From: Octopus sinensis | Lineage: Eukaryota | Length of the DNA stretch: 64,000 bases | Direction of reading: 5' to 3' | Assembly: GCF_006345805.1 (NCBI RefSeq) | Contig: NW_021836133.1 | Span: forward strand, 188,148 to 252,147 | Part shown: one piece after another, positions 4,417-58,529 of the stretch | How positions within the stretch are numbered: the first letter of the stretch is position 1 | How the letters are laid out: each line of letters begins with the position of its first letter | Translations under genes and position numbers: made by a program | Notes under the pieces: generated by a model | Database searches by the model: none | Told to the model about the DNA's origin: nothing | What the model saw: the letters and a program-made list of their open reading frames with translations, nothing else

Positions 4417-5898
4417 TTAATCCGACCAGCCAGCCTCATTTTCATCCTCCTCCATTGATTCACTCTTTATGACTTTAGACATGCTCTTGATTAGTGGTGA
4501 CTCCTCATACTTCTTCGACTTTGGAGGCTCTACATAGTCCTCTCCCTTCCCTTTTAGAGACTCTCCTCTTCTTTTTAACACTTTTTTGAGTTGTGACAAT
4601 ATATCAATTTTTTCCTCTTCCTTTTTTGGTTCAATCTCACTTTTTGTTTCATTTTCTTTTCTTTTTCGGAATTTGAACTGATTTATCCCTCCCGCGTCTA
4701 GAATTGAGTCAAGCAGAGCCTTCAGTTTTGGTTCTCCCGAATGCTTCGGAGTGACCTCGACAGGTTTTTGTCATCTTCGAATACAAAATTTTCCTCGATT
4801 TCATTTTCTGATGACAAAGTCGTGTTTTTTTCTGCAATTTCAGTTTTTGGAAAAATGTTGGATTCGGGATGCGAAGCCTCGACCTTTGGTGGTGTGGACA
4901 CTACGGGATCCTCGGTGAATTCGGAATCAAGATCCGGTAAATCCACGGTGATTTCGGTCAAAATAATCGACGGAGCAATCCCCGTTTCTTTTTTAGGGAG
5001 ATAATTCAAATCACTTACAATCCCTGAAATAACAAATTGAGTTTAACCAGAAAGCACGGGAAGACTTTCGGGGACCTTGATTTGAGGTACATCACCCAAA
5101 ATAGGATTGTAGTCAAAATTTAAACGCTGGAAAGGATCGAATTGATGGCCCAAAGTCACAGTCTCCGGTGCCTTGGCTGGCTCGTGTCTTTTTTCATGTG
5201 GTTTTGTAATTTTGAAACAACGTTAAGAGGATCAACAAAACAATAGTTTTTAAATCTATTATTAAAATAAAAAATTAATAATAAATATAAAATTTTACGC
5301 ATTTATATTTGTATTATAAATAAGAAAATTTCCAGTGCTTTTCAAATTGTTCGGAGGCCTGCCAATTCCCTCATGAAATGGTGTCTTATCCTTGTCTTTT
5401 AGTAAATCAAAAGAGGCTGGGACCATCGTAGTATTTTTAGATTGAGAAATTAAATCTAAATTCTAATTAATTAAATTAAATAATTTTATTTTTAATTAAA
5501 TTTATAATAAATATTTAAATAAAAAACTTTTGATAGTTTGTAGTGGAGTTTGGTTTCATTTTTAACATTTGGCATCACTTGGAGGTCATTTCTTGGAAAT
5601 TTTATTGTCTGAGGCAAATTGAATGGAGAATAAATCCTTATTGCTTTGCCCGATTTGTCCAGTTTTTTAATTTTTTGCACAACAATTGAAATTCTAGACT
5701 TTATGGAGGACAATCTGTCCTTACTAACATCTATCTATAGCTTTAATCGTTACATATTTATACATTTTGGTTTATTTTTTGAATAAAATGTCTAAAATCT
5801 TGTTGGAACTTTTCTAATATTAGCAATGATTGGATAATCTTTTCCTCGTCTGGAATACAAGGAGAAATTATCGGTATAACTGACTGCTCAATGCTCAT
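4417..5898 (-). CDS. WASH1: WASH complex subunit 1 (WAHD domain plus WH2/VCA), multi-exon
   Basis: Spliced translation gives IPIISPCIPDEEKIIQSL, KIKKLDKSGKAIRIYSP, EGIGRPPNNLKSTGNFLIYNT/FKNYCFVDPL, YNPILGDVPQIKVPESLPVLSGIVSDL, WH2 ALLDSILDAGGI and an acidic tail ending AGWSD*. Introns include 5735-5763 (29 nt) and 5024-5047 (24 nt). Two 1-bp frameshifts fall in A-runs (about 4765 and 5190). Confidence 0.9.
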
Positions 5899-7676: not shown

Positions 7677-8898
7677 ATGATGATATCTAAAGCATATCAA
7701 CAATGTAATGAAAATAAAGTTAATTTATCTAATTCCAAACTAAACGAAATTCCAAAAGAACTCCTAAATATAAAAAACATAAAAGTAATTATATTAAAAT
7801 AATTAAGTTCTTAAATCTATCAAAAAACAATCTAAAAATATTACCAAATTCATTTTTCGATTCCCTCCAAAAAGCTCTTTGGATTGATCTTCGCGCCAAT
7901 CAAATATCTCAACTACCTTTGGTCCAATCGCCAAAAGAGTGTGACCTCAACACACTTCTTCTCGACCGAAACGTCCTGACTTCAATTCCCAACTCATACG
8001 GTTTTTTTACATCAAAAAACAGACAGGATTTTTACCAAATTTAAAAAATTTGAGTCTTAGATCAAACCCACTGGACTCTAATTTTAAAAAAATATATTCT
8101 TCAGGTTTAGACAGTTTTTTGAAACATTTAAAAAACGAAATCCACCAAAATACCCAAATTCCGATAAAAATTGGTAAAAAATTAGTTTTCTATGAATTTT
8201 AAGATAAAAAATCAAAAATTATGAATAAAAATAAACCAAAAATTGTTTCCGACGATCTAAAAATTGTGACTCAGAAAAAATTGGATCGTTTAAAGTTGTT
8301 TTTTATTTATAATCTTCAGTGTATGTCGAGCTTTGGTTGATTGGAGAGAAAAGACCAAAATAATTAACCAACAAAAAATATTTGATATTCAAATTGGAAA
8401 AATAAGTTTATTTTATTATTTATTAATATATTTAATTTAAATATATTAATTTTAAGAAATTAATAATAATATTAAAAATGCACCTTTTGGAGTTGATGTG
8501 ACTCGTATGCCTACTTCTATGGAAAATGAGATTGTAGACATAAAAATTGACTTTTAGGCCAAGAACAGTCCCATAGACCAGATAGTGGCTAAGAAAAATT
8601 TTTCGACTTTTGATTTGATGGAAAAAGAAAGAAAAAGGCGGGAAATTTTTATCACTTTTTAGGGCTGAAGACGTGGTACAGATTACAGAGGAACTTCGTG
8701 AATTTAATAATAAAATAATAAATAAAAGGCATTCTAACGTGTATGAATCATTGAATGAGGCAAAGAAAGATTTAAATATTGTATTAAACATTTAATTCAT
8801 TATAGATAATGGAAATGAAGAATAAATTGAAAAAGAATTATTCAGAGTTGGAGGATATTAGAATGCTACAACAAGAAAATAAATTTGATTTATTTTAA
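7677..8898 (+). CDS. Leucine-rich repeat protein with C-terminal coiled coil, LRRC27-like
   Basis: LRRs LNLSKNNLKILP, WIDLRANQISQLP, LLLDRNVLTSIP and LSLRSNPL joined across 23-25 nt introns, followed by charged helical exons. The start is uncertain. Confidence 0.8.
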
Positions 8899-9122
8899 AA
8901 TAATTTATTATAAATTTTATTATTTATTAATTAAAATAACGAAATTAAAATTTCTTTATTATTAAAAATAAATTTAAATGAAATTTTATAGTGAAAACTA
9001 TTATAATTAAATCAATAGACACAAAAATCTTATTATTTCGAACAAATAATTGACTCACAAAATTTAATTAAAAAATATTTATAAAAAATATTTTAATTAT
9101 TTAAATTTAATTTTATTATCAT

Positions 9123-9787
9123 ATGGGGGAGTGTGGATATGAATGTTAGTAAATTAAATAATAATTTTTTTAAGATTTGGACCATCCTGCTGATATTCAG
9201 TATTAAATATTAAATTAATAAATATAGAATCCATTCCTGTATAAATTTAAACATGAAATTTTTAGGGTCTCCAAATATCGAGGAAGCCTTTGAATTGGCA
9301 TTTTTATTTTTTAAATCTTAGGCTGCTCTCGGAATGTACGGATATATGACAAATATAAATAAAGTTGAATTTAAAAATTATTTTGATTTTACCGTTGAAG
9401 GTTTTTTGTGATTATTTTTAACGTAGGACACGATTTATATTCTTTACTTTACAATTTCCTGGATGAAATAATTTTTATATTTTCCTGCGGTCAATATTTT
9501 GTCGCAAATGTATTTTTTGGTTATTTTTTTAATATTTAGGATATAAATATTACTCAATTTGGTCAAAATTGTGATGGAGGATGGTCTTTGGAATGTAGAT
9601 TGTAAGATTTGTGGTTTTTTGATTCATTTATAGAAAAGGAGAGGAGTTTGATTTGAATAAACACGAACAAGTTTTAAATAATATTTTTTATTTTTTGGGG
9701 ACGGAGATCAAGGCTGTTACTTATCATTGTATGAATATTGTTACAACTAGTAATCGTACTGACATTTTTTTTATTGTCGATATTTAA
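9123..9787 (+). CDS. ZBTB8OS: Archease (cofactor of the RTCB tRNA ligase)
   Basis: Spliced translation MGECGYEYLDHPADIQIHSWSPNIEEAFELAALGMYGYMT...GHDLYSLLYNFLDE...GEEFDLNKHEQGTEIKAVTYH..FFIVDI* is colinear with recalled animal archease. Seven introns of 24-32 nt and an 11-nt exon; the last acceptor lacks its A. Confidence 0.92.
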
Positions 9788-10074
9788 ATAAATCAGTTTT
9801 TTAATATATTTTTTAATAATTTCGATTATTATTTACTAATAATAAGGGCTGGGTGTGTCTTGACTTGTTATTTTAATTCCAAAACATGAGTTGTGGTGCA
9901 GGCAGTTTTTAATTAATTAGCCGTTTTTGGTTGTGAATATTTTTCTTATTTTTAATAATTTCTGGATTTATGTGTGGAATATAAATGATAGATTTACCTA
10001 TTTATAAGATTATACTATTGCAAGGACAATAGGCTATTTATGATTAATTATCGTAACTGATAATTTGAAAATCT

Positions 10075-23582: not shown

Positions 23583-24500
23583 TACACCCCTCGACATTAA
23601 AATCCGGACAGTTAATAAGTCGTCATTTTTATTATCAATTTTATAAAATTAAAAACTTGTTTGCAGAAAAATACTCCTTTGTTGCTTTCGAATATGACAT
23701 GGGGCATTGTCTTGTTGGAATATGAAGCTATTTAATCCCATTTTAATGGCTGATTTTACCAGATTGTTGGCAAGAATGTTTATATATTGTCCTGAGTTTA
23801 TTTTTTCATCGATGAAACATAACGAACCCATTCCAAAATATGAAAAGCATCCCCAGACCATAATTTTGCCGCCACCACACTTAACAGTTGGGTGATAATT
23901 TGAATTTTTGAATTCATTTCCCCTTTTTCGGTATATTATTTGTCTTTATGGTGCATAATAAACTTCAAAAGTACACTCGTATGAAAAAATTACTGATCTC
24001 CATCCTTCATCATATATATCAACGAATATTTTCGATATTTCATATTTTTGAGTATGTTTTTTTTACTTAATAACGGTTTTTTCTTTGCTACTCTTCCAAA
24101 TAAAACATTCTTATTTAAATTGCGAGTAATTGTTCGCGGGGAAATTACTTTTTGAGTGATGGTTTCCATTTCTAGAGCGAGGTCTTTAGCAGATTTTTCA
24201 CTATTGGCTTCAGAAAGTTCCACTAACATTTTGATTTTGTTTGTATTGAGTAATGTTGGTCGTCCAGACCCACTTTTTCTATAAATGGTTCCTGAGTTTA
24301 TGTATTTTCGAATAACATCGAAAACGGTCGATTTCGGAACTCCGAGGATATCAGAAATTCTCCTATAAGAAAAATTTTGCTGGTAATAAAAAATAATTTG
24401 TCCTTTACAAAAAGAATCCATTAATTTTTTCTAAAATATTTAAAAAAAATTAGCTCTTTTAACTATAATAGCAAAAGTATCCGGAATTTTACGCCACTAA
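23583..24500 (-). mobile_element. Tc1-like element, decayed and 3'-deleted
   Basis: HTH region and GRPTLL in ORF 23990-24421, then VWGCFS...FQQDNAPCH. Degenerate aaaatccgga terminal motifs. Confidence 0.85.
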
Positions 24501-24900
24501 AAACAGTTTAAAGTTTCTACTAGCAATTAATCAACTAAGAATTTCTACTAGCAATTAATCAACTAAGAATGTCCTTGTTTGGTCAATAAATGTGTAATGT
24601 TTTGTCATACGCATTTATGCACTGGATTCCGTCCTCTATGTCCTCTGAAGCCCAAATCTAGTTCTGAGAGAGTAGATAACTGACATGGACAATTCGTAGG
24701 ATTCTCGTCTATTTATTGACCACAAACAAATATCAGTCAACATTGCCAGTCGATGTAACAGAACAGACTGTGCTTGGTCGATTAGGTACCAACTTTAATG
24801 AGATGTACGAGTTGTAGGACCCCTGTCTTTTAATATAATTATAAGAATATGTTTATATATATTTGTTGGGTGGGTGGTAATAAATAAAATTGAGGTTTGA

Positions 24901-26797
24901 ATGGACGATGTGGATCTGGATGACTTGTCGAAACCTCTGTTGAACACGTCGAGTAGTGGGACCTTCTCGACTACGGAAAGGGACTGGTTGGTAAGCTCAG
25001 TGTACGACTACTACCGAAAGAAAGGAATATGGTGCATAATAGTGGACGAACTATTCAATATAATGTATTAAAGACTAAGTGAATATAGACGAATTGTGTT
25101 TTTGTGTGTGTTTGTAATGTACGTATATAAATGTGTGGACTTTGATTGGTGGAATATGAAAGAAGGGAACATATCAGACATATTCCTACCAGTGGAGTCA
25201 TGTCTAAGAGTGTGTAGTAGAGGGGAAATGTGTATAGTGGTGGGAGTGGGAATATTCAGTGTTGTCAAAATATGTATTCTATTATGGAGACTGCCCCATT
25301 TGTGGAATATGAGGAGATTATTGAAGGATATGTCTATAAATTCAGTAAATGAGTGGATGTGATGGTAGAATGAACTGTACGTGACTGCATGGGAGAGGAT
25401 TGAGAGAGGACTAATAGACAAGGACAGTGGCCTAGATGAATTACGTAAGAATGTAAGTATAATGTAAGTTTGCCACAGCATGATTGTCCGACATACCAAT
25501 TTTATGGTAGGACTAATAAGAGAATTCGAATCTATTCCTTGCTTTACAAAATTGATGGAATTGTACTTGTTTAAGCTCTTATTTCCGTCGTGTGTGCAGG
25601 GGACTGTATTCTCAACAAGGGTGAGTATAGCAGAGATATACCGAGTGGGGGGTCTGAGGGAATATGCGGAGAGAACGTACCCTTCTCTAATATGGTAGAA
25701 TTAGAACACGGTTGGTGGTGATGTGCTTGTTTGGCTTAGTTTTATCCCCATTCTTGTTTGTTGTCCAACTGTTGTATGTGTGCTTCGAATATGCTGAGGT
25801 ATGTCTGTCTGATTAGTTTAGATGATTCGTAGGGCTCCTTCCAGTATATTTCGACACCGCTGGACTCCTATTGCTTACTATTCCCTTCGTAACTACTCTG
25901 AATTGGATCATGAATTGGAGGAAAGACTTGCTTTGGCCTATCCTTTTGCCAATCAGTATATTCAATGTTTTTCTTCCCCATTGGTGGGTGTGTTGGCAAG
26001 ACATGCTACTTATTTTGCGGGGGCTGTCCTTCTCTTGTTTGCTGTACTTACACTCCTTCATGACACTATTCTTCAAGTCCCCAGAATTGTGACTGCTATT
26101 GCCATCACTAGTCTGTCTTTGTTTATTTACATTCCAGCTGCTGTTTATGCCTTTGCTAGTAGTCGACAGGTTGTTTTCTCTCTCCTTATCTTAGTCTACC
26201 ACTACTAATCCACACCACATTATCCCCCATCTGGTAGCACATTTATATCATTTCTCCCCCGACCAACATCAACCACTCCACACTTATCGACATTTTACAC
26301 TCCTCTTTCAATCACATTTAGTTGTACTTATTCAACACTTACAGATTTATTTGATACAACAAGTGGCTGCACCGTTTACTGCTCCCTTATTTCTTTTCTT
26401 CTTTTTTAGACATCAAATACCACGACTTGTACATTTTGTTTGTCAACATACTCTCCGTACACACGCAGGTGGAGATATGCTGGACTATGCTCTCCTTCAT
26501 GTCCCCCCTGACCACACCACTCTTCATGATAAACTCGAAATATCACTTCTTGCATTTTCGGTGCTTTTATTCTTACATTTCAGAGAAACAATCCAAGTTG
26601 GACTCCCCCTTCACAAACTCGAACATTTATCCTACAACACGCTCGTGACAGTTTGCCTTCTTTTTCTATTTTTAGTGCAAGCCTACTTACAGTCCACTGA
26701 GCCCTCTTCACTTCCCCTAAATACTGACTTGGATGGGGTTAACCACGAGTTTCTAACGAGTATTATATATTCCCGCATGAGGAGAGACGCCCAATAA
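24901..26797 (+). CDS. ATG9: Autophagy protein 9 (lipid scramblase), apparently intact, 9 introns of 22-31 nt
   Basis: VYDYYRKKGIWCIIVDELFN, RNYSELDHELEERL..AYPFANQYIQCFSSPL, FAGAVL, LFQ, APFTAPL and KLEISLLAFS/RNNPSW. One open frame is obtained after removing GT-AG introns at 25065-88, 25345-68, 25445-68, 25677-98, 25799-821, 26170-94, 26321-44, 26561-83 and 26645-75. Confidence 0.9.
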
Positions 26798-28859
26798 TAT
26801 ATTTTGTATTTTTTCATTCCCTGTTTGAATAGCAGTAGTACGTAGATAGGGTGACTACACTTCAAGCTTTCGTCAATATGGACATAATTTTTGGAGAGAA
26901 TCAGCACTGCGTTAAACAGTTAGGAACTGGCAGTCAGTTGCTTATATTGAACGGTATTCAGCATGTCGCATAATCTGTTTTAATCTTGAATACAGTCTAC
27001 AACAATCTTGAAAGTTCTTTACTGTATCAGATATTTTTGAGTAGTGCAGTCAAGTGTCATCAACAGGACTTTTACTCGTTCACACCTCAGTTTGAATCGA
27101 ATGTAGTTTTATTAGGATTTCAAACAGAGCTAGTTTTTCTTTTGTTGAGAGAACTATTTCGCAATTGTATAGGATTCTTACGAAAGATAGACATTCTAAA
27201 AACAAATTATTCCTAAAACCTATTATTTTTGAATTTTGGATGCAAAATGGAAAAATTCCAAAGTGAAAGTAAAATAGAGTTAAAAATTAAGTTTTCTTAA
27301 GTTTTTTACTACACGATAATTCAGTGTACAATTATTAATCAAATGTGAAATAAATATTACTAAAAACAGGTTAAAATGAAAAATTTTGTACTATTTTTCC
27401 GACTGAATTATCAACCTTACAGCGTCGGTTAATAAGAGTAAAAATTTTTTCTTTCAGCATTCACAAAACGAATTGTACCGTTTACAATCTAACATACAAC
27501 TCGGCAAAAAATTTAATGCTCTATAATCGCTAAGATAGATGCTATAAGTTATTTTCTCAATAAGAATATTTACAATTTTGTCTTAGCTAGCATCAGTTCC
27601 ATCAATAATTAGAAAAATCTTTTCATTAATTAACAATCCGATTATTTTATTTCACATTTTTCGGTCAAAATTCCGACATTATTTTGACATTTTGATTCTG
27701 AAGGTAACTTGAATTCAATAATTAAAAAAATTATTAAGGCAGAATTAATATAATGTAATATTTCTTAAACATATGCCAAATGAATGGAAAGTCTGCCAAA
27801 TGAAGTATAAATATAAAAAATGTTGGTTCCAAAATAGAGACCAATTCTCAATTCCTCCCAACACAAGGTTCATTGACAGAACTGTGCCAACCGTTGACTA
27901 TATAAGATCATTGTACATACTTGATCTTCTTCTAAAAAACAAAAAACCTGTAAATATTTAATCCAACTGACCAGGTGCTTTGCGTGGGTCCGACCGGGAT
28001 TTCCAAAACCGTGACAATCACGGGAAAATTGACCAAAAATGTTCCAAATGAATATATATCAGAATTCATAATTTTTTCGGCGACATTTAGAAACTCTAAT
28101 TTTACAGAAACAATATTAGGACATGATTAATTATTTTTGTTCAGCAAAATAGAATTTTCCAAAAATGTCACTTATCATTTTTGTCATCAATCTCCAAACC
28201 ACTACAACAATCCAACTCTTCTGAGGTGTTCTGAGCATTTCAATTACAAGCTCACTTCTACTTCCGCAGGCTCAATGTGTTTTAGACTTTGCTAATCTTA
28301 AAGAATTTATTATGTTGACTTTTTCATTCTAACAAATTTTATTTTCATTTCAAAAATGATTTTTCTACTTAGTTTGTCTTCTTGTTACCGATCGGAGGGT
28401 CGAACGCTTGTCGATATTATTGTGGCTCTCTGGTTGACGTAAATCACTAATGTCACTAACAAATCCTTAAATCCGTTACGTGGGAATTGTTTTGCAGTAC
28501 TGTTAACCTAGCTTTACTTAGTTATTTGTATTCGATTTTTAAGAACTTCGCCAAATCTTTTTCCTTTCTATGCTCAGAACAGTTTGAGCTTGTGAGTTTC
28601 CGTTTGCCTCCAAACCTTCGGAATAAACAATGGGCAGCACTCTAAACACCTGTTTCTTTTCTTTTTCCTCTTCTCTTGGCCAGACCTCTCAAAAAGTGCA
28701 ATGGAGCGACATCCTCTGAGTAATAAAAGACTCAATCAACGAGCATCAAGAGATAATATAGATTGCAGTCAGCATGGCATCTGACTTAAGAGACGAATCA
28801 TTTTTTTGATATTAAAAAAGTTTTTACTGGTTTTTAAAAACGAATAGTGTGCTCAGGAC

Positions 28860-29350
28860 GCCGAAATGAACATTTAATCCTAATGTTTCTCTTTGTAATA
28901 TATGTGGCGAGAGTAAAATCATGCTAAATTTCATAAATGTTGATCACTGTCAAATCAAAAATTAACGACTATTTATTATAAACATACTCCCCACTTTATT
29001 AAACGTTTACAAAATTGATAGAAAATTTTGAAACAATAGTTACATTTTACCAGTATGAATATTCAAACTTTTGTAAATAGAAAAAAGTAATCGTCACATA
29101 ATATCTCTAAATAAGAAGCTTCTTGCTAATTATAAAATAAATACAATAAACTCCGTGATGATCTGATTAAATCTTTCGACAATTCCCTGACTCTTTGGAT
29201 TGTTTAGTCTCATATGTATTTGAGTAATGCAGAACTTGTCACAGACTTTGTCATATAAGAGTTCTTTGATTCAGATAAAAATTTATCAAAATTGTTTTAA
29301 CTTTTACTCCAGCTTTTATTTTTCCTATTCTTCTAAAAGCATGATTAGAA
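28860..29350 (-). mobile_element. Ginger-like integrase remnant within the 2.3-kb insert in the dynein
   Basis: VCDKFCITQIHMRLNNPKSQGIVERFNQII. Confidence 0.6.
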
Positions 29351-30879
29351 TAAATGTCTATTACAAACATTAATCAAGAAAAATGACTTTTCACATTTAA
29401 ATCTACAAAATAAGCTAATTTTATGACTTTTGAAAAATCTTAACCTAATCTACCCAAATCAGGTCCTTTGGCCTTTCTAACATCCATTCGTTTATCATGA
29501 GCTGGTTTGAATAATGAGGGTTTATTGAGTCCATTTCAATGTCTTGTGAATCTGTATTCTGATCCATCATCCGATTAATGCGACATTTCATGTCAAAACG
29601 GCTAAGAGATATTCTCGGGTGACTAACTCTTTTCTATCTTTTAAAAAAGCATTTCTTCTTTTTTCTTGGTCTTCTATTAGCTTTCCGGTGTATTTGTATT
29701 TTGAAAAACGGGGATGTCAAATTCAGGAGATAGTTCAGTCCCGCCTGATTACATTTTAATTTGGGATAAATGTTTTTATTAGATATATTATATGTAAAAA
29801 AAAATAATGATTTTTTAAATATTCAAAAAGTGTGTTGGATTTTTCCGACAGATAGTCGACATTATACTTAATCTTAACATATAATCACATATAATACATT
29901 TCCATCATTCAAAATAATTTTTGCAAAATATTGTTTAACTCCGTGGTCATTCCTGCAACATTAAGTTCCCCCAAATAAGTCAATTTGACAAGCCACTGTT
30001 CCACCAAGAACCTAATCTATCCAAATCAGACATGTGTGGTTGCCTCGGAAGTTAATTGGTCTCGTCTGATTATTTCAAATAAAATTCCGTAGAATTCTCC
30101 CGTCATTATTTGTCTGTCGGAAATTTCTAAATTCATTCTTCTAAACTCAGAAATCATTGGTTCATTCTCCGTCAAATTTAATTCGATTTATGCTTATTTT
30201 AAATCAACAAAATACACAAAGTTTACCTTTTTAGTTCTGTCATTACCTCGCAGTGCAACTGTTCAAAACTTGAAACTCTATCCAAAAGTGAATTAAAACG
30301 ACATTTCAGATCATTTAGAAGTCTTTCACTGCATTCGGACTGTTCTTTAAGGTTTTCGACGAGGTTTTAAAATTTGTTGGACCCGGACAGACGGAAGTGA
30401 ATCTACGGCCCTTATCTGGGAAAAAACGAATATTTTTTATTGATGATTTGAATATACCAGCACCAGAGATCTGGAGAGCTCAAACTCCAATCGAATTAAT
30501 TCGGCAGTGTCTCGGAAACGGAGGTTGGTACAACAGGAAAATGATTGGTTCGGTCATTTATGTCTATTTTGTGTAGAAGACTTTTGCAAACTGATTGACA
30601 TTAATTTCTGTTGTACAATGGGTCCTCATGGTGGGGGTAGAAACGCGGTGATGCAGGAGTTTTTGAGATACTTCAGCATGGTCTCCTTTGTGGAAATGAG
30701 TGACACAAGCATCCGCCACATATTCGACACAATCATACGCACGTGGCCAGGTTAAGAAGTAAAGATGAATAATTCAGATGGGCATAAATCGATTTTGGGA
30801 CACGTAGATCAGATTGTTATGGCATATACCAAAATGTCCTCAAATTTTTCCTTCCGACTCCGAACAAGACTCTTTACAA

Positions 30880-32752
30880 CAGAGGTGTCAATTTCGCTTC
30901 GAGGGCCACATTTATAAAATTTCTCATTAAGGGAAGATTAATTCTGATATTTATTATCATGAATAACTAAAATAAAAGAAACTAAATTATTCAATCATCG
31001 CCCTTTAATTTTGGTGAAAGCTGCTTCCAGAGGATGACATCTTTTTTTTAGATAGAATTTTTGATATGTCAGGCTGAGCTATTCATTTAGTTCCGACTTT
31101 TATTAAAGAAGATAAATGTTCATCATTTAATCTTGTTCTTTGAGCAGTTTTTGTCAATTTCATAAAAGAAAAAAAGCTGTTCACACAAATATGTCGAACC
31201 AAACATAGCAATGATTTTTGTCGCAAACTTTTTAAAGTTTTTAAACTTTCCAGAAAGATATGAAAAGAAAGCAGGTATTCCAGCCTCCAAATATTTAGCT
31301 TTAAGTATAAAATCTGATTCCAAAAGTTCCATTTGTAAACTTTCATCTGCATTGGAAGCATTAAAAGAGAATGGTGATGCGATTAATGAAAATTGTTGTT
31401 CAAAAGACAAAAGATCATTAAATCTTTCTTGAAATTCCTTTAACAACGATTCTAGTTGTTTTTCATACTGAGAAAAATTTATTACTTGATCCAAGATTGA
31501 CTTTTCATTTCGTCTGTGTTTTGCCCTTTCATCTCCATAAATAAAATTATTTCCGATCTCAACGAAGAAAATCTTTTAACAACTTTTTGAAGTGATAACC
31601 AGCGGACTGGAGTATAAAACGAAATGTCGCTGAACTGATTATAAATATCTGTCAGCAGTTTACTAAACTGCCGGTGGTTGAGGGGATGACCTCTGATATA
31701 GTTTACTGTTTTTGTGACCAAACTAATGGTATTTTCCACTTTTAATATTTTTGAACACAAATATTGCTGATGAATAATACAATAAAAATGAGCAAATGAT
31801 GACCCGGGATTTACCTTTTCTATTTCAGCTCGCAATTTGGCGGCAACGCCAGAATGTCGTCCAACCATATTCGGAGCACCATCAGTGCATAAACATACAA
31901 GCTTTTTCAAATCAAACCCATATTCAAAGAGAATTTGTAGTAGTTTTATAAAGATATCTTTACTTGTAGTAGTATCGTGCATTGGTACCAGTTCGAGAAA
32001 TTCTTCATTAATATTAAAATCTGAATCACAGACTCTAACAAAGATTGCTAATTGTGCAAATCCAACGACGTCGACTGTTTCATCGATTGCAACTGAAAAA
32101 TATTCGAATTTTTACAAATCAGACTTTAATTGGTGTTTCAAATTCAATGCCATTTCATTAATGTGTTCGGCAACAGTATTTCTTGTTAATGAAATATCTT
32201 TAAACAAGTGGGCGTCGTCTGAACAAATAATATTCGCTGTTTTTTGAAGGCATTGCTTGATGAAATTACCATCACAATATGATTTTCCATTTACTGCAAG
32301 CATTCTGCTGATTTCATAGCTTGTAGTGACTAATGCAGTACTTCGATTATGACTTTTTGTGAAATGAGTCTGTAACGCAGATAAATTTTTTCGCAATTCA
32401 TTTGAAACATGCATTGGACCTTCTTGGTTAATAAGCAGCCTTCGAAATAATTGTATGATAGATGATTAGATTGATAATGCCTCTTTAGGTTGTGTTCTTT
32501 CGGTATAGCGATAAAATTGTTACATATCAAACAATGTCCATCAACCTTTGTGTAAAAATAGAAAAGTTCTCATTTATCTAGAAACACTCTCCGTTCATCT
32601 TTCAAGCATCGTTTCTTTATTATTGCAGAAAAAGCACGTGACATTAACAAACACGATTTAAAAATACAATTAAAAAGTTTAATTAAATGTAACAAAAATA
32701 AAAAAAATAATTTTTTGTAGATTTTTTGTAGACCGCATGTTTGACACCCCTG
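30880..32752 (-). mobile_element. hAT (GTF2IRD2/SPIN-Buster-like) element inserted in the dynein
   Basis: Ends cagaggtgtcaa / ttgacacccctg and a degenerate 8-bp TSD ctttacaa vs cactacac. CTDGAPNM, HCIIHQ-like, VRWLS and FGSTYLCEQLF motifs. Dynein PTPNKT/HYTFN is rejoined on removal. Confidence 0.92.
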
Positions 32753-35700
32753 CACTACACGTTCAACATGGAAGCTAATCTAAAGGAGACTCAGATTGTG
32801 TTTCTCTTCAATGACACACAGGTTGGGACTTGAAGAGACCTCAATGGCAGATCAAAGACGAAGGATTCCTAGAGAGCCTCAACAACATTTTAAATTCAAG
32901 AGATGTTCAAAATCTTTACGGAAATGAAGAATTGGACAAAATATATCAGCAAATGCAGCCAATTTGTAGTGAGATGGGGATGCAGCCTACCAAGACAAAT
33001 TTATACTTGATATACACCAAGAGAGTGAGAACTAATCTGCACACAGTGGTTACCAATCAGTGGCGGAAAGGTTCTTGACAGATTTCCCTGAATTGGAAGA
33101 CGACCAAGAAACAATCTCAGAAATAGTAAAGACTGAATAAAATAATCATCGATTAAATCCTGTCGACTTATCTACCAAAATGTGATCGAACTGTCCAACA
33201 AATTCCTGATTGAAATGAACTGTCATAACTACGTGACTTCTACTAGATATCTCGAATTGACTTCATCTTTTTCTTACCTGCTCAGAATCATGAGATCTCA
33301 AGTCGTATCTGTCAAAAACAGACTAAAAACGGGAACAAGTCTATAAAGTAGTAGAAGAAACAAGAGCTCATGTTAAGAAGGAAGAAACTGATGCATGTGC
33401 AAAGGCAGAAAAGTGCCAGAACATCGCTGACTATGCCCAACGAGACCTGAGTGAAGCCCTTCCCATACTGATTGGGCAATACGTCTTAGATTAGAGTGCC
33501 GCCTTATTGAGTCTCAAGTCCTTCAACAAGAATGACGTATTCGAAGTAAAGGCTATGTCCTGTCCTCCCGATGGGGTCAAACTTGTGATGGAGACTGTGT
33601 GCATTATGAAGGGGGTCAAGCCCAAAAAAGTCCCCACCGACATTCCCGAAGTCAAGGTCGACGATTTTTGAGACCCCGGAAAGACCCTTTCCAAAAACCT
33701 CAAAAATTTATCGACTCTCTTTTCACCTACGACAAGGACAACACCCCCGAAGACATCATAAGGAAGATACGTCCTTACATCGATGGGTACGGGAACTCGG
33801 CAGCAAGAAATCCCGGTGCAACAGACTGTCGAGACTTTGGAATACACGTTACAAAATTTTGTGGGGGATATTTTCATAGCTGCCGTGTCGATTGCCTATT
33901 TGGGACCATTCACGGTATAAAATTTAGATAATTTTATTAAAGTATAAATATCGGGCTATTCTATACGAGAAATGTCTAAAAGTCCTTGCTGAGTGGAAGG
34001 TCCCTATTACTGACCACCTGAAGATCGTGAGATCTGTGGGGACCCAATAATAATACAGAATTAGCAAATTACCGGACTGCCTAAAGACAACTTTTCGGTA
34101 GAAAATGCACTCATCGCCAATAACTCAAAACGGTAGCCACTATTTATTAACTCATGGATTGAAACGCTGGAGAAGAACTCGACCCAGTCCTTGACTCTCT
34201 GCTTCTGAGACAAGTAAAATAACCTGAACGATTGAAGACCTTCAAACAATCGGGGACCACTGTAATCAGATTGGGGGACACAGTCATCCCCTACCACGCC
34301 GACTTTCGGTTTTATATCACCACCAAAATGTCGAATCCACATTACATGCCAGAAATAAGTGTGAAAGTGGTTTTGATCAATTTTACTCTCAGTCCTCGGT
34401 ATAAAAGTCATTTTCAGTTTTAGAGGTCTCGAGGATCAGTTATTGGGGATTGTCGTGGCGGAGGAACGTTCTGATCTTGAAGAGGCCAAGAACCAGTTGA
34501 TTGTCAATAATGCTCGAATGAGGCATATAAATACAAATCAATATTCAAATAGGAACGAATTGAAGGAATTGGAGGACAAAATTCTTGTTCGACTCAGTGC
34601 ATCGGAAGGCAACCCCGTGGATGACATTGACCTAATAAAAATGCTGGCATGCGGGTAGCTATGAATACTCAAGTACTGTTTTTTTTCGTAGTGGATTTGG
34701 CTAAGATTGACCCAATGTATCAATACTCGTTGGAGTGGTTCGGAAAAATATTTCTCAACAGTATTGCCAACGCAAAAAACTCAGGTCATCTCAAAAAGCA
34801 GGAACTAAATTGTAGATGATCTGAAAGAGAGAATAACTTTCATAAACGAATATTTTACTTTCAATTTGTACTCCAATGTGTGTCGATCGCTCTTTGAACG
34901 TAACAAACTCTTGTTTGTATTCCTCTTTTGTGTGCGAATCAAACAGAACTTTGGAGAAATAAAGGCAGTTTTTAAAATTCAACGAGTGTTTAGAACGAGT
35001 GAAGATATCTCCTGTTGAGCTCATTCGAAAAGACCATTCAAAAACCGAACCCCGCTCCAGACTGGCTCTCAGACAGAAATTGGAAGGAATTGGAGGGACT
35101 GGCCTTACTGGACTCATTTAAAGGAATAGTCGCACACTTTATTGACAATTTTTGCAAATATAAACATATGTTTGATAGTTCAGATCCCCACAAGTACATC
35201 TTATAGTTTTATTAACAACCATCCACTGCCAGCTCTCTGAGAATGATTGTCCTCAAATGTCTTCGGTCTGATAAAATAACCCCGAATATGCAGCAATACG
35301 TCTCCAACAACCTTGGAAGCCATTTCATCGAGCCTCAGGTGAATTTGGGTGATGGAGACGGTTTAGACTACTCACCTTAGTCTAGTCTTCAAGGACTCAT
35401 CTCCCTTCGTTCTTTTCGTCTTCATTATTTCTGCTGGAACTTACCCTGCGGCGGATTTATACAAATTCGCGCAGGAAATGCGCTTTTTTAAAAAACTTTT
35501 GTCAATTTCTTTTGGACAAGGACAAGGCCCCAGGGCTGAAGAGATTATGAGAGAAGAAATTGAGCACTGGTTAGCTTGTTTTATGGAGTCATCTTGAAGA
35601 GGAGGAAATTTGGGTCCCTGGGATTTAATATTCCTTACGAATTCACAGACGGAGACTTGCGGATATGTATTAGTCAGTTGAAAATATTTTTAATGGAAAG

Positions 35701-38700
35701 TAAAAAAGTTTTAAGCCATATTTATATAAAAACACGTCTTAAAGTACACTGCTGGGAGATAAACTACGGCGGACGACTCACCGACGACTGGGACAGAAGG
35801 ACAGTCGCCTACATGCTGGAGGATTTTTACAGCGACCGTGTCCTTGAAGAGAAATACACTTTTTCCAAAACAGGAGTATTTTTCCAACTTCATCCTTCGA
35901 CGGACCACAGAGTTATGTTACTGATTTTAGTTGCCAGGGGTATTTGACCTATATAAGAGACCTGCCTATCAATGATAGCCCGGAGATATTCAGACTGCAC
36001 GAGAATCCAGATATAACTTTCGCTCAAAACCAAAGTGCCAGAATACCAGAAGACTCGTCTGAAATGTCTGTTTATTAGTTTATGATTGAGATTGTGGACA
36101 AACTTGTCAGAGATATCTTCCCCATTCTTTCCCTCGAATTCAGCATAGTGGAAATATCTTTAAAGTATCCCGTCCTTTACGAAGAGTCAATGAACACTTC
36201 CCTCATCCAAGAAGCCATAGTGGATAATATTATATGTCAGTTAGAATCGTCTTCTTGGTGTCATTAGAAGGTGTTTGGAAAACTTACTCAAGGCCGTCAA
36301 AGGACTGGTTGTCATTTCCCAGGAGTTGAAGGACATGGCACAAAGTTTGTACACCAATAGTGGGAAATTGTGTATTCTCTGTTTTTTTAGTTTTTAGGGA
36401 TATCCCTCACTCAAATCACTCTCTGCCTGGATGATGGACTTGGTGGACTGGACGAGATTCATTGGCGATTGGATAAATGGCGGAATTCCCAAGGTCTCAT
36501 AAAGGCAATATGCTTAAGTTAGTTAACTTTTTTTTTTAACAAGTCAAAATTGTTTTAATCAATTATTTTAGAATGACCCTAGGATAGCGTGTGAATTTCC
36601 GCGGACAATTGCACACGAAATCCTCTGGAAGAGCCACGACGTCTCCCGCGGATCATATGCTTAAGTGTTTTGGATTTCGGGTTTTTTTTCCGCAGGCTTT
36701 TTTGACGAGAACTCTCTAAAACTATGCTCGAAAGCACGTGATTTTAATTGATAAAATAAGTTTCTCTGTTAAAGTATGGCCGTAAGCACAGTGTAGGTGT
36801 TGGAAGGAGAGGATATATCCAGTCCTCCTTTGAGTGGGTGTTACATTACGGGTTTGTTTATGGAGGGGGGTCAATGAGACGGGGGAGGTCGGGTGGAGTC
36901 GAGAGCGAAGGAACTGTATATGGAAATGCCTCCAATCTGGCTGATTCCGACAGAAAATTAAAATTATGACGATTCCTTGTACGTATGTCCAGTTTATAAG
37001 ACACTGACGAGAGCTGGTGAGTCATGTGGTGGAGGAATGTGTAGGAACTCTGTCCACCACGGGACATTCCACAAACTTTGTTTTCTCGATAGATCTATGT
37101 AGTTGGGGAAAGCCAGATTACTTGATAAAACGGGGAGTGGCCATGATATGCGCTCTGAACTATTAACATTTGATTTATCACTAATTTTATTATTTGGATT
37201 TGCTCACACTTTCTATTGCATAGTTAAGACCACTTAGTGGTAGTAACTAGGTGTGTCCATTTGATGCCAAATACGCTTGGTTTGTCTAAATAGACAAAGT
37301 TTTTTGAAATAATAAAAAATGTAATAACTATTAGGCAACAACGATTATGTAATAGCATTTTTTGAGTTTATTCCTATAATCTGTTTATATATTTTTTTTA
37401 ATTTCTCAACACTGTAATTTTATTTTGCATCATTATTGTCATCCAGAGTGTCAGAACATTTAACAAGAGAATATAATCTAAATATTTATTTTATTTGATT
37501 TGACATTTCTCTTATTTGTTACTCACAATTTGAATGTCCACTGGTTGGTCTTCGATGTCTTTTTCCACAAATGATGACATTTCTGGGCTGACCAATGCAA
37601 AGAGACTGCTTAGAGAAGCGTTCAATTTTACTTCAAAGTCAATTTACAAATGTAACAAGATGACACAGAGCCATTTTACGTGTTTTGAAGTCCATTTCGA
37701 CTAATCTGCCAGCACCAAGCACACTTCAGGGTCTTTTTCGATAATTGGGATGTTTGGTTCTAACAGATTGGAGGAAATGGACTCCGGAAGGGAATAAAAT
37801 TCATTGGATATCCATTATATGAATCATACGCGTTTCTGTGTATGGAATTTGTTATATTCTCACCATTAAAATATGTTTATATCACTGATACAGTGTGATT
37901 GTAGTTATTCGACATTCTTTTAGTTTTTTTAATAATTGTGAATGTTTGGTCCTAACAGATTGGCATATAACAGCCACTTATTTTCAAACATTCGCCACCC
38001 AGTCAAGTAGCCCCGGGTGATTCCAAGGGGAGTCAGCTGCTGGTCCAAAAGTAATTGTCATGAATACATCACGACAATACTTTTTCAGTACTCATTTCAA
38101 TACTGTTGAATATTCAGTTTACTTCGATGACTCTTGTGGAGATTATCCCTTAGACTTTTGTTTGGGTCTGGTCAAAAATGAGGAAATATAAGTCTAAAAA
38201 TGTGATTTGATAAATATGATCCTACTTTTAACTACGGATATAAGATCATCAAGTGTTGCCCCGACTTTTATCATTATTCGGAAGAGCGAGATTTTTTTGA
38301 GCTTTATAAAACCGAATTCGTCGGAAAGAACTGCAAGATTGCCGTCAGCAATTATATTTGTGCTAATTTATAAATAAAGTTTAAAATAACATTCAAGCTG
38401 ATATTGTATAAGATAGGAAAGCGGAGCTTATATTCTTTAAGAAGCTTGTATGGGTCCATTCTTAGCGATTTCAACTGCAAAAGTAACGCTAATTTAGACT
38501 ATATATCCCGTTTTGAAAAACCTTGAAATTTGCACTATTTTTATAGGTTTTTTTTTATCTCTTTGTCGATTACAATTGAATTTAAAATTGTTTGTCAACA
38601 TGAGTCAACATAGTATTTGATGAGGTTTGTTGTCTGAGTTGGTAGTATTTACAGCTGTTTGGAGATCCTCACACCAGGTTGCAAGGAGTATGTACAATAA

Positions 38701-43959: not shown

Positions 43960-44740
43960 CTCGCAAATTGGCCCCTCTCAAATTGGCCACAAATTTTAAT
44001 TTTTTTGTACTATAATTTTTATTCTTCAAAATTTTTTTTAATAAATTTGAATTTTATTAATAAAATTTGTCCCAAATGTCTTCTCGCAATATTTATACTC
44101 GTCCGAATTTTAATCAGAAAATAGAAATTTTATCTTATAAAGAAAGAATCCTCATTTTTCGTGTCATCATTTGGCCGAAAGAATTTCTTTTTTGTTTAAT
44201 AAAAAAATTTCTCGAAAAACAAACAACAACATTCTTTTGAAAAAAGATTCTCTTCTCAAAGATAGCAAGATACACAATCTAGGTTCAAAAAAGTATCAAA
44301 TCTTAAGTTTCCTGAACTTGATGCAAAATTGGTTGAATGGATGGATTTGATTGAGTCTAGAGGTATCTTATTTAGGGTCTAATATTTAGGCGGTTTTCTT
44401 AATGATGCCTTAATTTCTAGTAAGGCTATGTTTTTTGCGCAACAACTTAAACTAGTAAATTTTAAAAACTCAAATGGTTTTTTGAAAAAATTTAAAAAAC
44501 GACATGGATTTCGAATGCGAAAATTCATGGAAAATTGAAAACAGATGATCCCGTTGATATCTAATCTTTCCTTTCTAAATTTCGTGAAGTTTTACAGAGA
44601 TACAATGATGATCAAATTTACAACTTAGATGAAACTAGATTGTTTTATAAAATCATTCCTTCAAAATCTATTTGTCGCAACCGATTTAAAGGTTACAAAA
44701 ATTTCAAGGATCGTGTTTCTATAATGCTTTGCACAAATTG
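43960..44740 (+). mobile_element. pogo/Tigger 5' part, related to 20591-22244, with a 27-nt intron; truncated by a CRE insertion
   Basis: KFPELDAKLVEWMDLIESRG/GFLNDA, FKNSNG and IYNLDETRLFYK..KDRVSIMLCTN. Confidence 0.85.
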
Positions 44741-44744
44741 ATTG

Positions 44745-47420
44745 AAATAAGTTAGTCAAGGATTAAAAGGCACTTGCGGTTGCACGCATGATGGAGTGTG
44801 CATTGCCGCGAACGACAGCTATTCCAATTTGTTGGAATAACCATGACACTTCTCGAGGCTCCCCACGTCGCCTAGCAACTTTTCCTCCGACTTCTCTGAT
44901 GAAAGAAGTCGTAAGAGGGCCGGTTACCCCAGAAGTCTCCACAGCGATAGGTACGAAGCGGTACCGTTGTCCAAGATTTGCGTATTTGGCAATTTTTCTT
45001 TGCTCTGCAGCATCTGCTGCAGAACCTGGAGAAACAGCAGAAGAGATCATATTAGTTTTGGAATGGGTGTCAACACACGTTGAATCCCAAACCAACGATT
45101 TTCCACAGGAGTAGGGAAAAGTGGTCATCCCATCGGGTCTTTTCCCATCTCCACGATATAAGCCCACTGGCTCTAGGATCGAGGGGAAGCCCGCCGACTC
45201 AAAAGCTCTTAAGATAACATTGTTAATAGCGGAGTGCCGAGGAGCTCGGCCAGCACTTCGTTTGCAAGAGAGTGGGTGTACACCTTTGACGTCAACCATT
45301 TTTCCACATCTACAACGATGTTGTTCGCAGATGTCAAGTCCGAGTCTCAGTGCAGTACCGATACGCATGCAGTCATCCTCTAATAATGTTCCGAGGCCAG
45401 CAATTGGCATAGCATTCAGCCATGACCCACTGAGTGGCACAGCTGCAGAGCGTAAGCAGGCGAGGCGGTGCTGGTCGAGCCTCATTGCCAGGTTGTCTGC
45501 GGTGAACGCCTCTCTCTACTCGACTCCCACACGGCCTTTTTCCTCCTCAAAAATTGCATCCACGTTCCCAAACTGTTATATTTATTGAGATGCTCGCCCT
45601 GCTTTATACAAGATGAAATATTGCATTCTATCGATGATACGTTAAGATTGTGAGCCGAGTGGATCCTAAATGTCCGTTTCGATAATGATGGGTGGACCCA
45701 GTGTAAACTACCTCTTAATTCTGGCAAAGCTGGCCTAAGATCCGCCCTGGACCTTGCCCTCCCAGCTTTCCTGTCCTCTCACTCATCCTGCCGAAGGCTA
45801 TCCTTGGAGATTCTACATAAATCCCCCGAATCTTCTTTGGACAGGCCTTTTGAAGATGGATGTACAGTGGGCGCAAAAAAAATCCGGTTTTCTTATTTTT
45901 CGAATTTTTCAATATAAATTTTATATTATTTTTTTTTAATTTAGTATCATTTGAAATGTAAATCGAGTATGTTTTTAATTTTAAGTATTTTTTTATTTTT
46001 CATAGAGATATCTTGAATTTAATTTTAAAATGCGCAAAAAAAACTCGGTTTTTTTAATTATTGAGTCTTTTATTCTCAAAAATTTGAAATTGTTGTCATT
46101 TTTGTTGTTGTTGGATGTCGTGTATTTCAGAAATTGTGAAAGGACAAATTATTCAACTTTATTTCCTTAATTGGACATATAAACAAATTTCAGAAGAAGT
46201 AGAAATTCCCAGATCAACAGTGGGAGATTACATACGTAAATACAAAAAATATGGAACAACACAGAGACTGTCCGGTTCTGGAAGACCTAGGACATTAAAT
46301 AATGATGATATAAATACTTTATTGACGCTTGTTTCTGACAATCCGAAAAAATCTTCCCGTTGCCTGTCAAAGGATCTTCATTCTTTGACAGGAAAAATCG
46401 TCTCAAAACGAACAATTGGGAATTATCTGAAACAAAAGGAAATATATTCACGTGTGTGTCAAAAAAAACCGTATCTGTCTAAAATTAATATCGAAAAACG
46501 ATATGCCTTGTCAAAAAAATTTATCGCACTGAATATGACGTCATGGAAATCAACTATTTTTAGTGATGAATGCTGTTTCGAAATTTTTAATCACAAAAAA
46601 AGGAATTTTGTTATAGGAAAAACAACACACGTCTAGAAAAATCGCACTTATCTCCAACTGTTAAATTTGGAGGGGGAAAAATAATGGTGTGTGGGATTTT
46701 CGGGTATTATGGAGTAGGCAATCTAGTATTTATAAATGGAACTATGAACTCAGCAACTTATGTGAACATATTATCAAATAATCTGTGGGAGTCCGCTGCG
46801 AAAATGTGCTTGAATGAATTCATATTCCAACAAGACATGGCTCCTCCACACACATCAAAGATCACGAAAGATTTCTTTGCCGAAAGAAGCGTCAAACTAT
46901 TGGATTGGGCACCGCAATCGCCAGATTTAAATCCAATAGAACATCTTTGGGCATATATTAAAAGTAAATTGTACGAAAATCCTCCAAAAAATATGCATGA
47001 GCTGAAAGATAAAATTATCGAAATTTGGGAAAATATGCCGAAAGATCTAATACAGAAACTCATAAACAGCATGCCGAGAAGGGTGTACGATGTTTTTATG
47101 GCTAAAGGACGGCATATTAAATATTAATTTGACATTTTTTTAAAAAACCGGGTTTTTTTTGCGCATTGTAAATTTAAATTGGAAATATCTCTTGAAAAAA
47201 AATAATGAAAATAATCAAAATAAAAAATAAGAGTTACTTTTCACTAAAATTTAAGATTAAAAAAAATATTATATCGCACAATATAAAAAAATAGAGAAAT
47301 TAGAAAACCGGATTTTTTTTGCGCCCACTGTATGCTGTGGAAGGAATCAGGATTAAAATTCCCGATCCAAACATCACTCCAACAGAGCTGGGACAAATTA
47401 AGCTACAAAATTGACTTGTA
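44745..47420. mobile_element. CRE-like non-LTR retrotransposon, 5'-truncated with an inverted 5' segment; hosts a Tc1
   Basis: Minus-strand ORF 44763-45485 carries the C-terminal zinc finger and RLE (RPDG..VWD..ETSG..RGNA). The preceding post-RT region is on the plus strand (45500-45864, resuming at 47331). Confidence 0.85.
45865..47330 (+). mobile_element. Full-length Tc1 (DD34E) element
   Basis: TIR cagtgggcgcaaaaaaaatccggttttct at both ends and TA TSD. Transposase 46115-47127 has one frameshift at about 46620. 34 residues lie between QQD and the E of SPDLNPIE. Confidence 0.97.
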
Positions 47421-55779: not shown

Positions 55780-56478
55780 ATCTGTCCATTCAGTTTCTAA
55801 CGAAAGTCCTTTTAAAAGATATCGAGAAATAAAGGGAATAAATTCAATAATCCATGGTTATACATATATCTTATGTCTTTGATAATTTAAGTGATGAGTG
55901 TGTGACTTTGGAAGAAATGGATTCCTTCAAAAAGTGTTTGTCAGAAAAATCGCCCCGGGCAAAAAATGCTAAAAGACCGGTTTATTGTATTTCTTATATT
56001 TTAGATTTTCTTTGTTGCTGTGTGCAAATATGACGGGGACAGATAAAAAAAGTCCATTGATGATTGGAAAATTTAAGAAACCTGGATGCTTTAAGAATTT
56101 TAATGTGGAAAAATATATTGATTATAGACATTCTGAAAGGTCGTGGATGACTAGCAAAATTTCCAACGAATGGCTTCTTTCATGGGATCGTGATCTTCAA
56201 AAAAAATTCTGGTTGTTGTGGATCGATGCCCTTCACATGAAATTTACTCGAATTTAGTATCAATTGAACTGCTATACCTTCCTGCAAAAACGACCACAAT
56301 TTTACAACCCATGGATCAGGGAATCATCCGCTCATTTAAAGCGAACTTTAACAAAATTAAATTTGATGCGATGTTAGAGAAAATTGCCAATGAAACTGAT
56401 CCTGTCGATTCACACAAGAAGCTGAATTTAAAAGACGGTCTTTGTTTACGTATTTTGGATGGAAAAATGTTACTCTGA
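55780..56478 (+). mobile_element. pogo/Tigger DDE fragment with a 25-nt intron
   Basis: KMLKDR/FSLLLCANMTG, WMTSK, DRCPSH and LQPMDQGII. Intron at 55980-56004. Confidence 0.85.
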
Positions 56479-58310: not shown

Positions 58311-58520
58311 AAAAAACCATTCGATTATTTGAAAACATTGGATTTTAAAGAAGACGTGTGTGGAATAAAAAATTATATTATCAAAAGGATGAATTCCAAT
58401 GATATCACAAAAATTATGAATTTCGATGATCATTCCATTTCTCCTTTAGATTATTCTTTGTTGATTGAATGTCAGGCAACATCGTGCGCAGTAGAACGAT
58501 CATTTTCGATTCTGAGAAAG
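58310..58520 (+). mobile_element. hAT-like C-terminal fragment, same family as 54560-55770
   Basis: ISPLDYSLLIECQATSCAVERSFSILRK. Confidence 0.7.
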
Positions 58521-58529
58521 TAAAATCAA

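Follow-up and report, generated by a model that had tools for sequence, protein, structure and literature searches.

The 64,000-nucleotide stretch of DNA analyzed here, hereafter the window, comprises positions 188,148 to 252,147 of contig NW_021836133.1 in NCBI RefSeq assembly GCF_006345805.1, which is filed under Octopus sinensis. At window positions 24901-26797 (+) lies the coding sequence of ATG9 (autophagy-related protein 9), an autophagy membrane protein and lipid scramblase. The subject of this analysis is the strand composition of the gene, in which a purine- and G-rich 5' portion gives way to a pyrimidine- and C-rich 3' portion; all results on the inversion of GC skew, termed the flip, concern this single locus within one 64-kb window. 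The gene model was obtained by a minimum-intron search and then refined against the family alignment. It comprises 10 exons and nine GT..AG introns of 22 to 25 nucleotides (nt), where a preliminary description of the same DNA had quoted two introns, and it encodes an intact protein of 560 amino acids. The protein matches Pfam family PF04109 (ATG9) with an E value of 1.2e-69 (residues 30-477; profile positions 12-477 of 478). The experimentally solved human ATG9A (6wqz) is collinear with it (human residues 41-577 and query residues 25-514; E = 7e-45). ATG9 is here one intact gene on one strand.

The introns, all on the + strand, are compositionally distinct on the two sides of the gene. Those on the 5' side are intron 1 (25065-25088; 24 nt, purine-rich), intron 2 (25345-25368; 24 nt, 10 G and 0 C), intron 3 (25445-25468; 24 nt, 6 G and 0 C), intron 4 (25677-25698; 22 nt), and intron 5 (25799-25821; 23 nt), which ends just 5' of the compositional switch. 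Introns 3 and 5 were refined by homology, which for intron 5 restored the peptide VCFEYAE. Further 3' lie intron 6 (26170-26194; 25 nt, T/C-rich), intron 7 (26321-26344; 24 nt), intron 8 (26561-26583; 23 nt, T/C-rich), and intron 9 (26651-26675; 25 nt, T-rich). Excision of intron 7 yields a gap-free alignment to human ATG9A, excision of intron 8 brings back the conserved NNPSWTPP motif, and excision of intron 9 brings back the final reading frame. None of these last three introns interrupts reading with a stop codon, intron 7 being in frame and the frameshifts of introns 8 and 9 compensating each other; an annotation based on open reading frames (ORFs) would therefore give a plausible but wrong ATG9 C terminus. 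Among animals, introns shorter than 30 nt have been reported only for Dicyema japonicum and myxobolid myxozoans (PMC13644364), a class into which the ATG9 introns fit. The repeat-rich window, at ∼33% GC, is also compatible with the values published for the D. japonicum genome (36.7% GC and 49% repeats; PMC6736024).

From the first half of the gene to the second, base counts change from 257 G and 122 C (24901-25849) to 138 G and 256 C (25850-26797). The counts given in the preliminary description were reproduced exactly, with 91 G and 28 C at 25141-25440 and 27 G and 88 C at 26161-26460 (skew, +0.53 and -0.53). In a 300-nt profile, skew departs from ∼0 at 24.7 kb, climbs to +0.56, crosses zero near 25.8 to 25.9 kb, falls to -0.48, and returns to ∼0 at 26.8 kb. 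A purine- and G-rich block at 24770-25834 covers exons 1 to 5, introns 1 to 5, and ∼130 nt of 5' flank (287 G and 128 C; GC skew, +0.38; purine/pyrimidine [R/Y] skew, +0.12). It is followed by a pyrimidine- and C-rich block at 25835-26728 that spans exons 6 to 9 and the start of exon 10 (122 G and 248 C; GC skew, -0.34; AT skew, -0.23; R/Y skew, -0.28). By exon, skew is +0.23 to +0.53 in exons 1 to 5, -0.10 in exon 6, -0.81 in exon 7, -0.34 in exon 8, -0.47 in exon 9, and -0.18 in exon 10. The C-rich extreme is thus exon 7 (26195-26320, +), with only 5 G but 47 C in 126 nt. Exon 6 (25822-26169, +), which encodes the most conserved part of the protein, is a transition zone: skew is maximal at 25.2 to 25.4 kb and 26.2 to 26.3 kb and weakest in this central exon.

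When adjacent 900-nt windows were compared, the flip statistic reached z = 9.35 at position 25831, while the runner-up in the 64 kb scored 5.3 and the maximum in 300 shuffles of 100-nt blocks was 6.5. Penalized segmentation of the whole window returned few skewed blocks; the most prominent were the pair at 24825-25834 (+0.39) and 25835-26728 (-0.34), and in nearly all of the remaining sequence skew stayed between 0.00 and +0.10. A single change point fitted best at 25835, where a step outperformed a linear gradient (log-likelihood, -541.8 versus -554.4). A strictly sharp step was rejected, as the narrow support interval of the single-step model widened to 100 to 300 nt once all edges were fitted jointly. 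This three-edge fit placed the G/C switch at 25833-26028 (best, 25835) and the R/Y switch at 25676-25741 (best, ∼25726), that is, 5' of the G/C switch. The switch is a zone of ∼300 nt coinciding with exon 6. The outer edges of the skewed domain lie at ∼24770-24868 (30 to 130 nt 5' of the ATG) and ∼26720 (∼70 nt before the stop codon), and the 1-kb flanks have skews of -0.09 and 0.00. We note that two TATA-like strings face each other near the edges of the skewed blocks, at 24857-24866 (+) and ∼26761-26768 (-).

All three codon positions take part in the flip, with GC skews in the first and second halves of +0.41 and -0.21 (position 1), +0.26 and -0.45 (position 2), and +0.31 and -0.29 (position 3). 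The strongest skew is that of neutral sites, as a mutational cause predicts. At 4-fold-degenerate sites, the counts shift from 38 G, 11 C, 34 A, and 16 T to 13 G, 34 C, 31 A, and 58 T, taking GC skew from +0.55 to -0.45 (Fisher's test, 1.6e-6 for G/C and 8e-10 for R/Y). Intron interiors change from 21 G, 8 C, 33 A, and 35 T to 4 G, 19 C, 11 A, and 47 T (9e-5 for G/C and 5e-7 for R/Y), and introns 1 to 3 together hold 21 G and a single C. The third positions of leucine CTN codons are occupied by 13 purines and 2 pyrimidines in the first half and by 6 and 21, respectively, in the second. The preliminary description had argued that the introns share the trend and that protein constraint alone cannot account for it, and it had named a loss of skew at 4-fold sites and in introns as the contrary outcome; the skew persists at both. 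Because silent sites and introns carry the flip, a strand-specific force on the DNA, and not protein function, shaped it. In our view, the flip is very probably genuine and very probably arises from the DNA itself, and we infer a mutational origin.

The asymmetry is of the purine/pyrimidine type. At 4-fold sites, G is accompanied by A and C by T, and the keto (G+T) skew shows no flip (+0.09 versus +0.04). GC content and intron size are equal in the two halves of the gene. Across k-mer spectra (k = 1 to 4), the left half correlates with the right half once the latter is reverse complemented (r = 0.51 to 0.74) but not with it as it stands (r ∼ 0). In composition, each block is the reverse complement of the other.

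The encoded protein follows the DNA. V, G, W, C, E, and K are overrepresented in its first half, as are H, P, Q, T, and A in its second. From the first half to the second, V declines from 10.8 to 4.5%, G from 4.9 to 1.7%, W from 2.6 to 0.7%, and C from 4.5 to 0.7%, and H rises from 1.1 to 7.5%, P from 2.2 to 6.8%, Q from 0.7 to 5.5%, T from 4.1 to 7.5%, and A from 1.5 to 8.9%. Acidic and lysine residues thereby give way to His, Gln, Pro, and Thr, with Val, Gly, Trp, and Cys raised in the first half. An amino acid index, defined as G minus C in codon positions 1 and 2, is +0.24 and -0.30 in the two halves, compared to +0.01 and -0.03 at the same columns of human ATG9A, to which the halves are 27% and 30% identical. 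For a broader comparison, 64 ATG9 proteins that align over both halves were drawn from an exhaustive HMMER search in which the exon 6 peptide was the query. The half-to-half difference in the index is 0.52 here versus 0.03 ± 0.06 (maximum, 0.16) in these homologues (z ∼ 7.7). The amino acid shift is thus lineage specific and not a trait of the ATG9 family, and the earlier remark that amino acid usage is dragged along (V/G/W/C in the first half, H/P/T in the second) was borne out. The same exhaustive search retrieved no homologue above 44% identity. A word-indexed protein search gave one distant match only, a metagenome scan found no relative, and exact look-ups of three ORFs of the window returned no match.

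Outside the recognized host genes, the window is largely transposon derived. The other host genes are WASH (4417-5898, -), Sen54 (+), SRA1 (-), an LRR/coiled-coil gene (7677-8898, +), and a dynein heavy-chain fragment that extends from AAA3 to the C terminus (27773-37166, +; Pfam AAA_7, AAA_9, AAA_lid_11, and Dynein_C). Taken whole, all five have a silent-site R/Y skew of ∼0 and ordinary codon-position skews; the 4-fold sites of dynein, for example, hold 98 G and 114 C (R/Y, -0.04). The preliminary description, which had seen no obvious flip in the AT-rich genes at 4.4 to 9.8 kb, was accurate in this respect. A general rule by which silent sites track local composition was also ruled out. The Spearman correlation between the 4-fold base and local composition at positions 1 and 2 is 0.03 to 0.05 in the pooled host genes and 0.03 to 0.08 when transposon ORFs are included, while in ATG9 it is 0.27, or 0.48 for G against C. 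With the other genes as the codon-position baseline, the two halves of ATG9 deviate by a similar amount and in opposite directions. Since the other genes have neither the silent-site asymmetry nor the coupling, ATG9 is not the tail of a general property of the window.

Two of these genes show compositional changes of their own. In the LRR gene, skew flips in the opposite order, from -0.40 at 7736-8163 to +0.28 from 8173 onward. This change is significant at third positions (P = 2e-5) but not at 4-fold sites (P = 0.23), and it follows the passage from LRR to a Glu/Lys-rich coiled coil; the gene was therefore rejected as a second intragenic DNA-level flip, and its flip is mainly a protein-composition effect. 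In the 3' part of WASH (4417-5302, -), 4-fold sites change from 21 purines and 34 pyrimidines to 32 and 13 between halves (Fisher's test, 0.001), a silent-site heterogeneity that is weaker than that of ATG9 and opposite in order. A G- and T-rich segment at 9121-10033 (156 G, 80 C) with short + strand ORFs is probably a small gene with tiny exons. Dynein homology starts only at AAA3, a hAT-like element (31123-32414, -) interrupts it, and its model needs many implausible introns; the fragment is possibly a truncated or decaying copy. Nesting of ATG9 within the dynein gene was discarded, as no dynein-like N-terminal ORF occurs within 15 kb upstream of ATG9. Directly upstream of ATG9 lies a Tc1/mariner-type transposase remnant, recognized by translation (23649-24500, -), with a skew of ∼0. 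Beside it is a perfect 28-nt tandem duplication (24514-24570), and the G-rich block starts ∼200 nt beyond. Retroelement-like segments at 44500-45800 and 56300-59800 have ∼50% GC against 33% for the window, and the latter contains a skew block of its own (56865-57884, -0.32).

Several structural causes of the flip were tested and rejected. An inverted duplication or palindrome is not supported: inverted repeats linking the halves reach 21 nt at most, at 76%, and composition alone is mirrored. An antisense protein-coding gene was likewise rejected, as the three - strand frames of 24500-27400 contain no Pfam match at E ≤ 0.1, and neither Rfam families nor tRNAs were found in the whole 64-kb window. 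A simple-sequence or slippage origin was dismissed because k-mer repetition in the C-rich half does not exceed that of dinucleotide shuffles. The G-rich half is mildly above such shuffles (z = 2.7 to 2.9), as is a control region, and one small tandem repeat was detected.

The best-supported account of the flip is a mutation pressure that is anchored to the gene and strand asymmetric, with its polarity reversed between the two halves. Such pressure would have acted over a long time on a domain anchored to ATG9, from ∼100 nt 5' of the ATG to ∼70 nt before the stop codon. Its opposite polarity in the two halves would have pushed neutral sites to about ±0.5 and dragged amino acid composition along. 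Outside organelle genomes, we know of no other neutral-site skews of about ±0.5. Opposite strands are exposed around a point by three kinds of process, namely, opposed transcription, opposed replication forks, and break resection. We rank convergent sense/antisense transcription first as the source, with low confidence, and a sizeable part of the probability falls to none of the explanations considered. Sense transcription from the ATG9 promoter would be met by antisense transcription entering from the 3' end, and each direction would leave its own RNA-like strand purine-rich. Under Szybalski's rule, a purine-rich strand marks the RNA-like strand, and by this analogy the 3' half "looks" transcribed from the - strand. 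The skewed domain also matches the gene body, and opposed transcription would fit such confinement. Transcription-type asymmetry, however, expects one sign, whereas the sign of the skew inverts along the sense strand at ∼25.8 kb; a mid-gene inversion thus fits transcription only given a second, antisense unit, and an antisense transcript over the 3' half is speculative. Because the asymmetry is one of purines and pyrimidines, a converging process cannot be told from a diverging one by the sign of the GC skew alone. More broadly, it is possible, though doubtful, that the flip reflects a persistent, gene-anchored pair of opposed germ-line mutation regimes (convergent transcription or mid-gene forks) or, as a rarer variant, halves that are oppositely oriented in the germ line and joined by programmed rearrangement.

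A number of observations weigh against opposed transcription. The antisense RNA over the 3' half is hypothetical; Pfam and Rfam scans revealed no recognizable - strand gene, and the TATA-like strings at the two gene ends carry no statistical weight in AT-rich DNA. Sense transcription crosses the 3' half too, and the antisense effect would need to outweigh it. The other genes of the window lack a sense-strand purine excess at 4-fold sites, as the dynein value above illustrates. Transcription as such therefore does not skew this genome, and ATG9 would need special pleading. Known transcription-associated skews are, moreover, of the G+T type and far weaker.

Chance, or protein-level selection acting on two halves of a membrane protein, would account for the difference in amino acid composition between the halves and for nothing further; with z = 9.4, a flip at 4-fold sites and in introns, and no counterpart in 64 other ATG9 proteins, it was rejected and is next to impossible. 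Selection on the nucleic acid itself, such as long-range pairing of the G-rich 5' half with the C-rich 3' half of the mRNA or pre-mRNA, was assessed by folding 350 + 350 nt against global and half-wise shuffles. The two halves are joined by 154 of the 214 predicted pairs versus 47 in global shuffles, and the folding energy (-174.8) is slightly lower than that of half-wise shuffles (-158.1 ± 5.7). The cross-half pair count is nonetheless within 1 standard deviation of half-wise shuffles, with no specific complementarity and no inverted repeat beyond 21 nt, and the skew extends into introns and ∼100 nt 5' of the ATG. The cross-half pairing thus stems from base composition and not from selection; we know of no function for such a fold and regard this explanation as improbable to a high degree. 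A further candidate is a misassembly near 25.8 kb that fused two alleles, species, or strands into a chimera; dicyemid samples may contain several species. Reading frame, splice sites, and ATG9 homology are, however, unbroken across the junction, itself part of the most conserved stretch, and there is no inverted duplication. An assembly artifact would still require two source genes that were each skewed along their whole length, one positively and the other negatively, and it is very improbable indeed.

The remaining rivals invoke other ways of exposing opposite strands or a composite past. Replication forks from fixed initiation zones at the gene ends, meeting mid-gene in a gene-scale replicon or a gene-sized circle with a leading/lagging bias, would be expected to yield mirror-image k-mer spectra; upward steps are present at both gene edges, and the plus-then-minus order at neutral sites is of the terminus type under the bacterial rule. 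The flanks show no reciprocal skew, although they are partly transposon DNA and may be young, and there is essentially no skew elsewhere in the 64 kb. The asymmetry is also of the R/Y type with no keto flip; the G+T type is the product of cytosine deamination in both replication and transcription skews. We know of no nuclear replication skew of ±0.4 to 0.5. Circular contigs of Dicyema are mostly 600 to 800 bp and carry mitochondrial genes only in one published survey (PMC6543705), which lists its data under BioProject PRJNA527259 and SRA SRP021079, and ATG9 sits within a 64-kb contig between transposons. Of the interpretation put forward in the preliminary description, the DNA-level cause, the amino acid drag, and the sparing of other genes in the window stand, while forks from both gene ends are weakened by the flanks, the R/Y type, and the magnitude, and gene-sized circles do not fit the reported circles. 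Convergent transcription, which the same description had offered as an alternative, is the source that we tentatively favor. Mid-gene forks and circles are unlikely and rank below convergent transcription as the less likely source. A recurrent break or recombination hotspot near 25.7 to 26.0 kb, with ∼1 kb of resection on each side exposing opposite strands to damage or error-prone refill, would explain why polarity switches at a central zone; the half-widths of 0.9 to 1.07 kb match meiotic resection lengths in mice (0.75 to 1 kb; PMC5698624). That model predicts the opposite of what is seen in that skew is weakest at the center (exon 6) and strongest 400 to 600 nt away and ends abruptly at the gene edges. 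No C-to-T signature is evident, since the G-rich strand is short of T as well at 4-fold sites, and GC content is not lowered. In favor of the model, Roberts et al. reportedly described in 2012 mutation clusters that are strand coordinated and change strand where a break occurred; we still view the break as improbable. Equally improbable is a historical origin, in which the halves long evolved in opposite orientation to an asymmetric process and were later joined, whether through gene conversion by a paralogue of opposite skew, an ancient inversion followed by repair, or a germ-line arrangement unlike the sequenced, mostly somatic one. The better fit of a step than of a gradient speaks for it, as do block edges near introns (25835 versus the start of exon 6 at 25822; 26178 and 26321 versus introns 6 and 7) and chromatin diminution, which is reported for dicyemids (PMC6543705). 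It needs whole genes or regions with a skew of ±0.4 somewhere in the genome, of which the 64 kb contains none beyond short blocks; the window holds no paralogue or inverted copy, and the halves do not differ in intron size or GC content.

Known systems share some features of the flip but not others. Replication skew switches, such as bacterial origins and termini, mitochondrial genomes, and the human "N-domains," also show a sign change on one strand, an effect at neutral sites, and steps at the borders, and mitochondrial skews are of similar magnitude. They operate on scales of 10^5 to 10^6 bp and are of the G+T type, whereas the ATG9 domain spans 2 kb and one gene, is of the R/Y type, and has unskewed flanks within an unskewed window. 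Transcription-associated asymmetry and promoter-proximal GC skew in R-loop regions, reportedly treated by Green in 2003, Touchon in 2003, Polak and Arndt in 2008, and Ginno in 2012 and 2013, share with the flip an anchoring to a transcription unit, probable in the case of ATG9, and an excess of G over C on the RNA-like strand near the presumed start. Antisense or convergent units are known to give a "reverse" skew. Such asymmetry has one sign per gene, is weaker, and pairs G with T; in contrast, ATG9 inverts mid-gene, pairs G with A, and leaves its neighbors unaffected. Szybalski's rule, or the purine loading of RNA-like strands that Forsdyke is said to have described, likewise entails a one-strand purine excess at all codon positions. 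The 5' half of ATG9 obeys this rule, but the 3' half violates it just as strongly, and the other genes of the window are not purine loaded at silent sites.

Strand-coordinated clusters at double-strand breaks and the sequence skew around meiotic hotspots, the latter reportedly shown by Pratto et al. in 2014, share a mirror asymmetry of ∼1 kb per side. In those cases, the center is strongest, the effect decays outward, and a C-to-T or C-to-G signature is present, while in ATG9 the center is weakest and the skew stops abruptly at the edges. Prescott and Dizick are said to have described, in 2000, intrastrand purine anomalies at the two ends of the gene-sized macronuclear DNA molecules of hypotrich ciliates. 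The likeness lies in a gene-sized unit with a mirror-symmetric purine/pyrimidine bias at its two ends. Those molecules, however, are free and telomere capped, with the bias in short noncoding ends, whereas ATG9 is part of a 64-kb animal contig and is biased throughout its coding region.

Strand-composition switches serve to locate replication origins, termini, and promoters. To our knowledge, those of nuclear genomes are normally weak and do not invert inside a gene, and the literature searched yielded no report of nuclear GC skew in dicyemids. The ATG9 inversion is extreme in that it reaches neutral sites and has visibly recoded a conserved protein. If it was a single historical accident, it would be a curiosity. 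If the mutational regime behind it is instead still active, the locus would reveal the extent to which local mutation bias can drive protein evolution in a fast-evolving parasite with small populations, and sequence alone would provide a readout of transcription or replication in the germ line of an animal for which culture is not possible.

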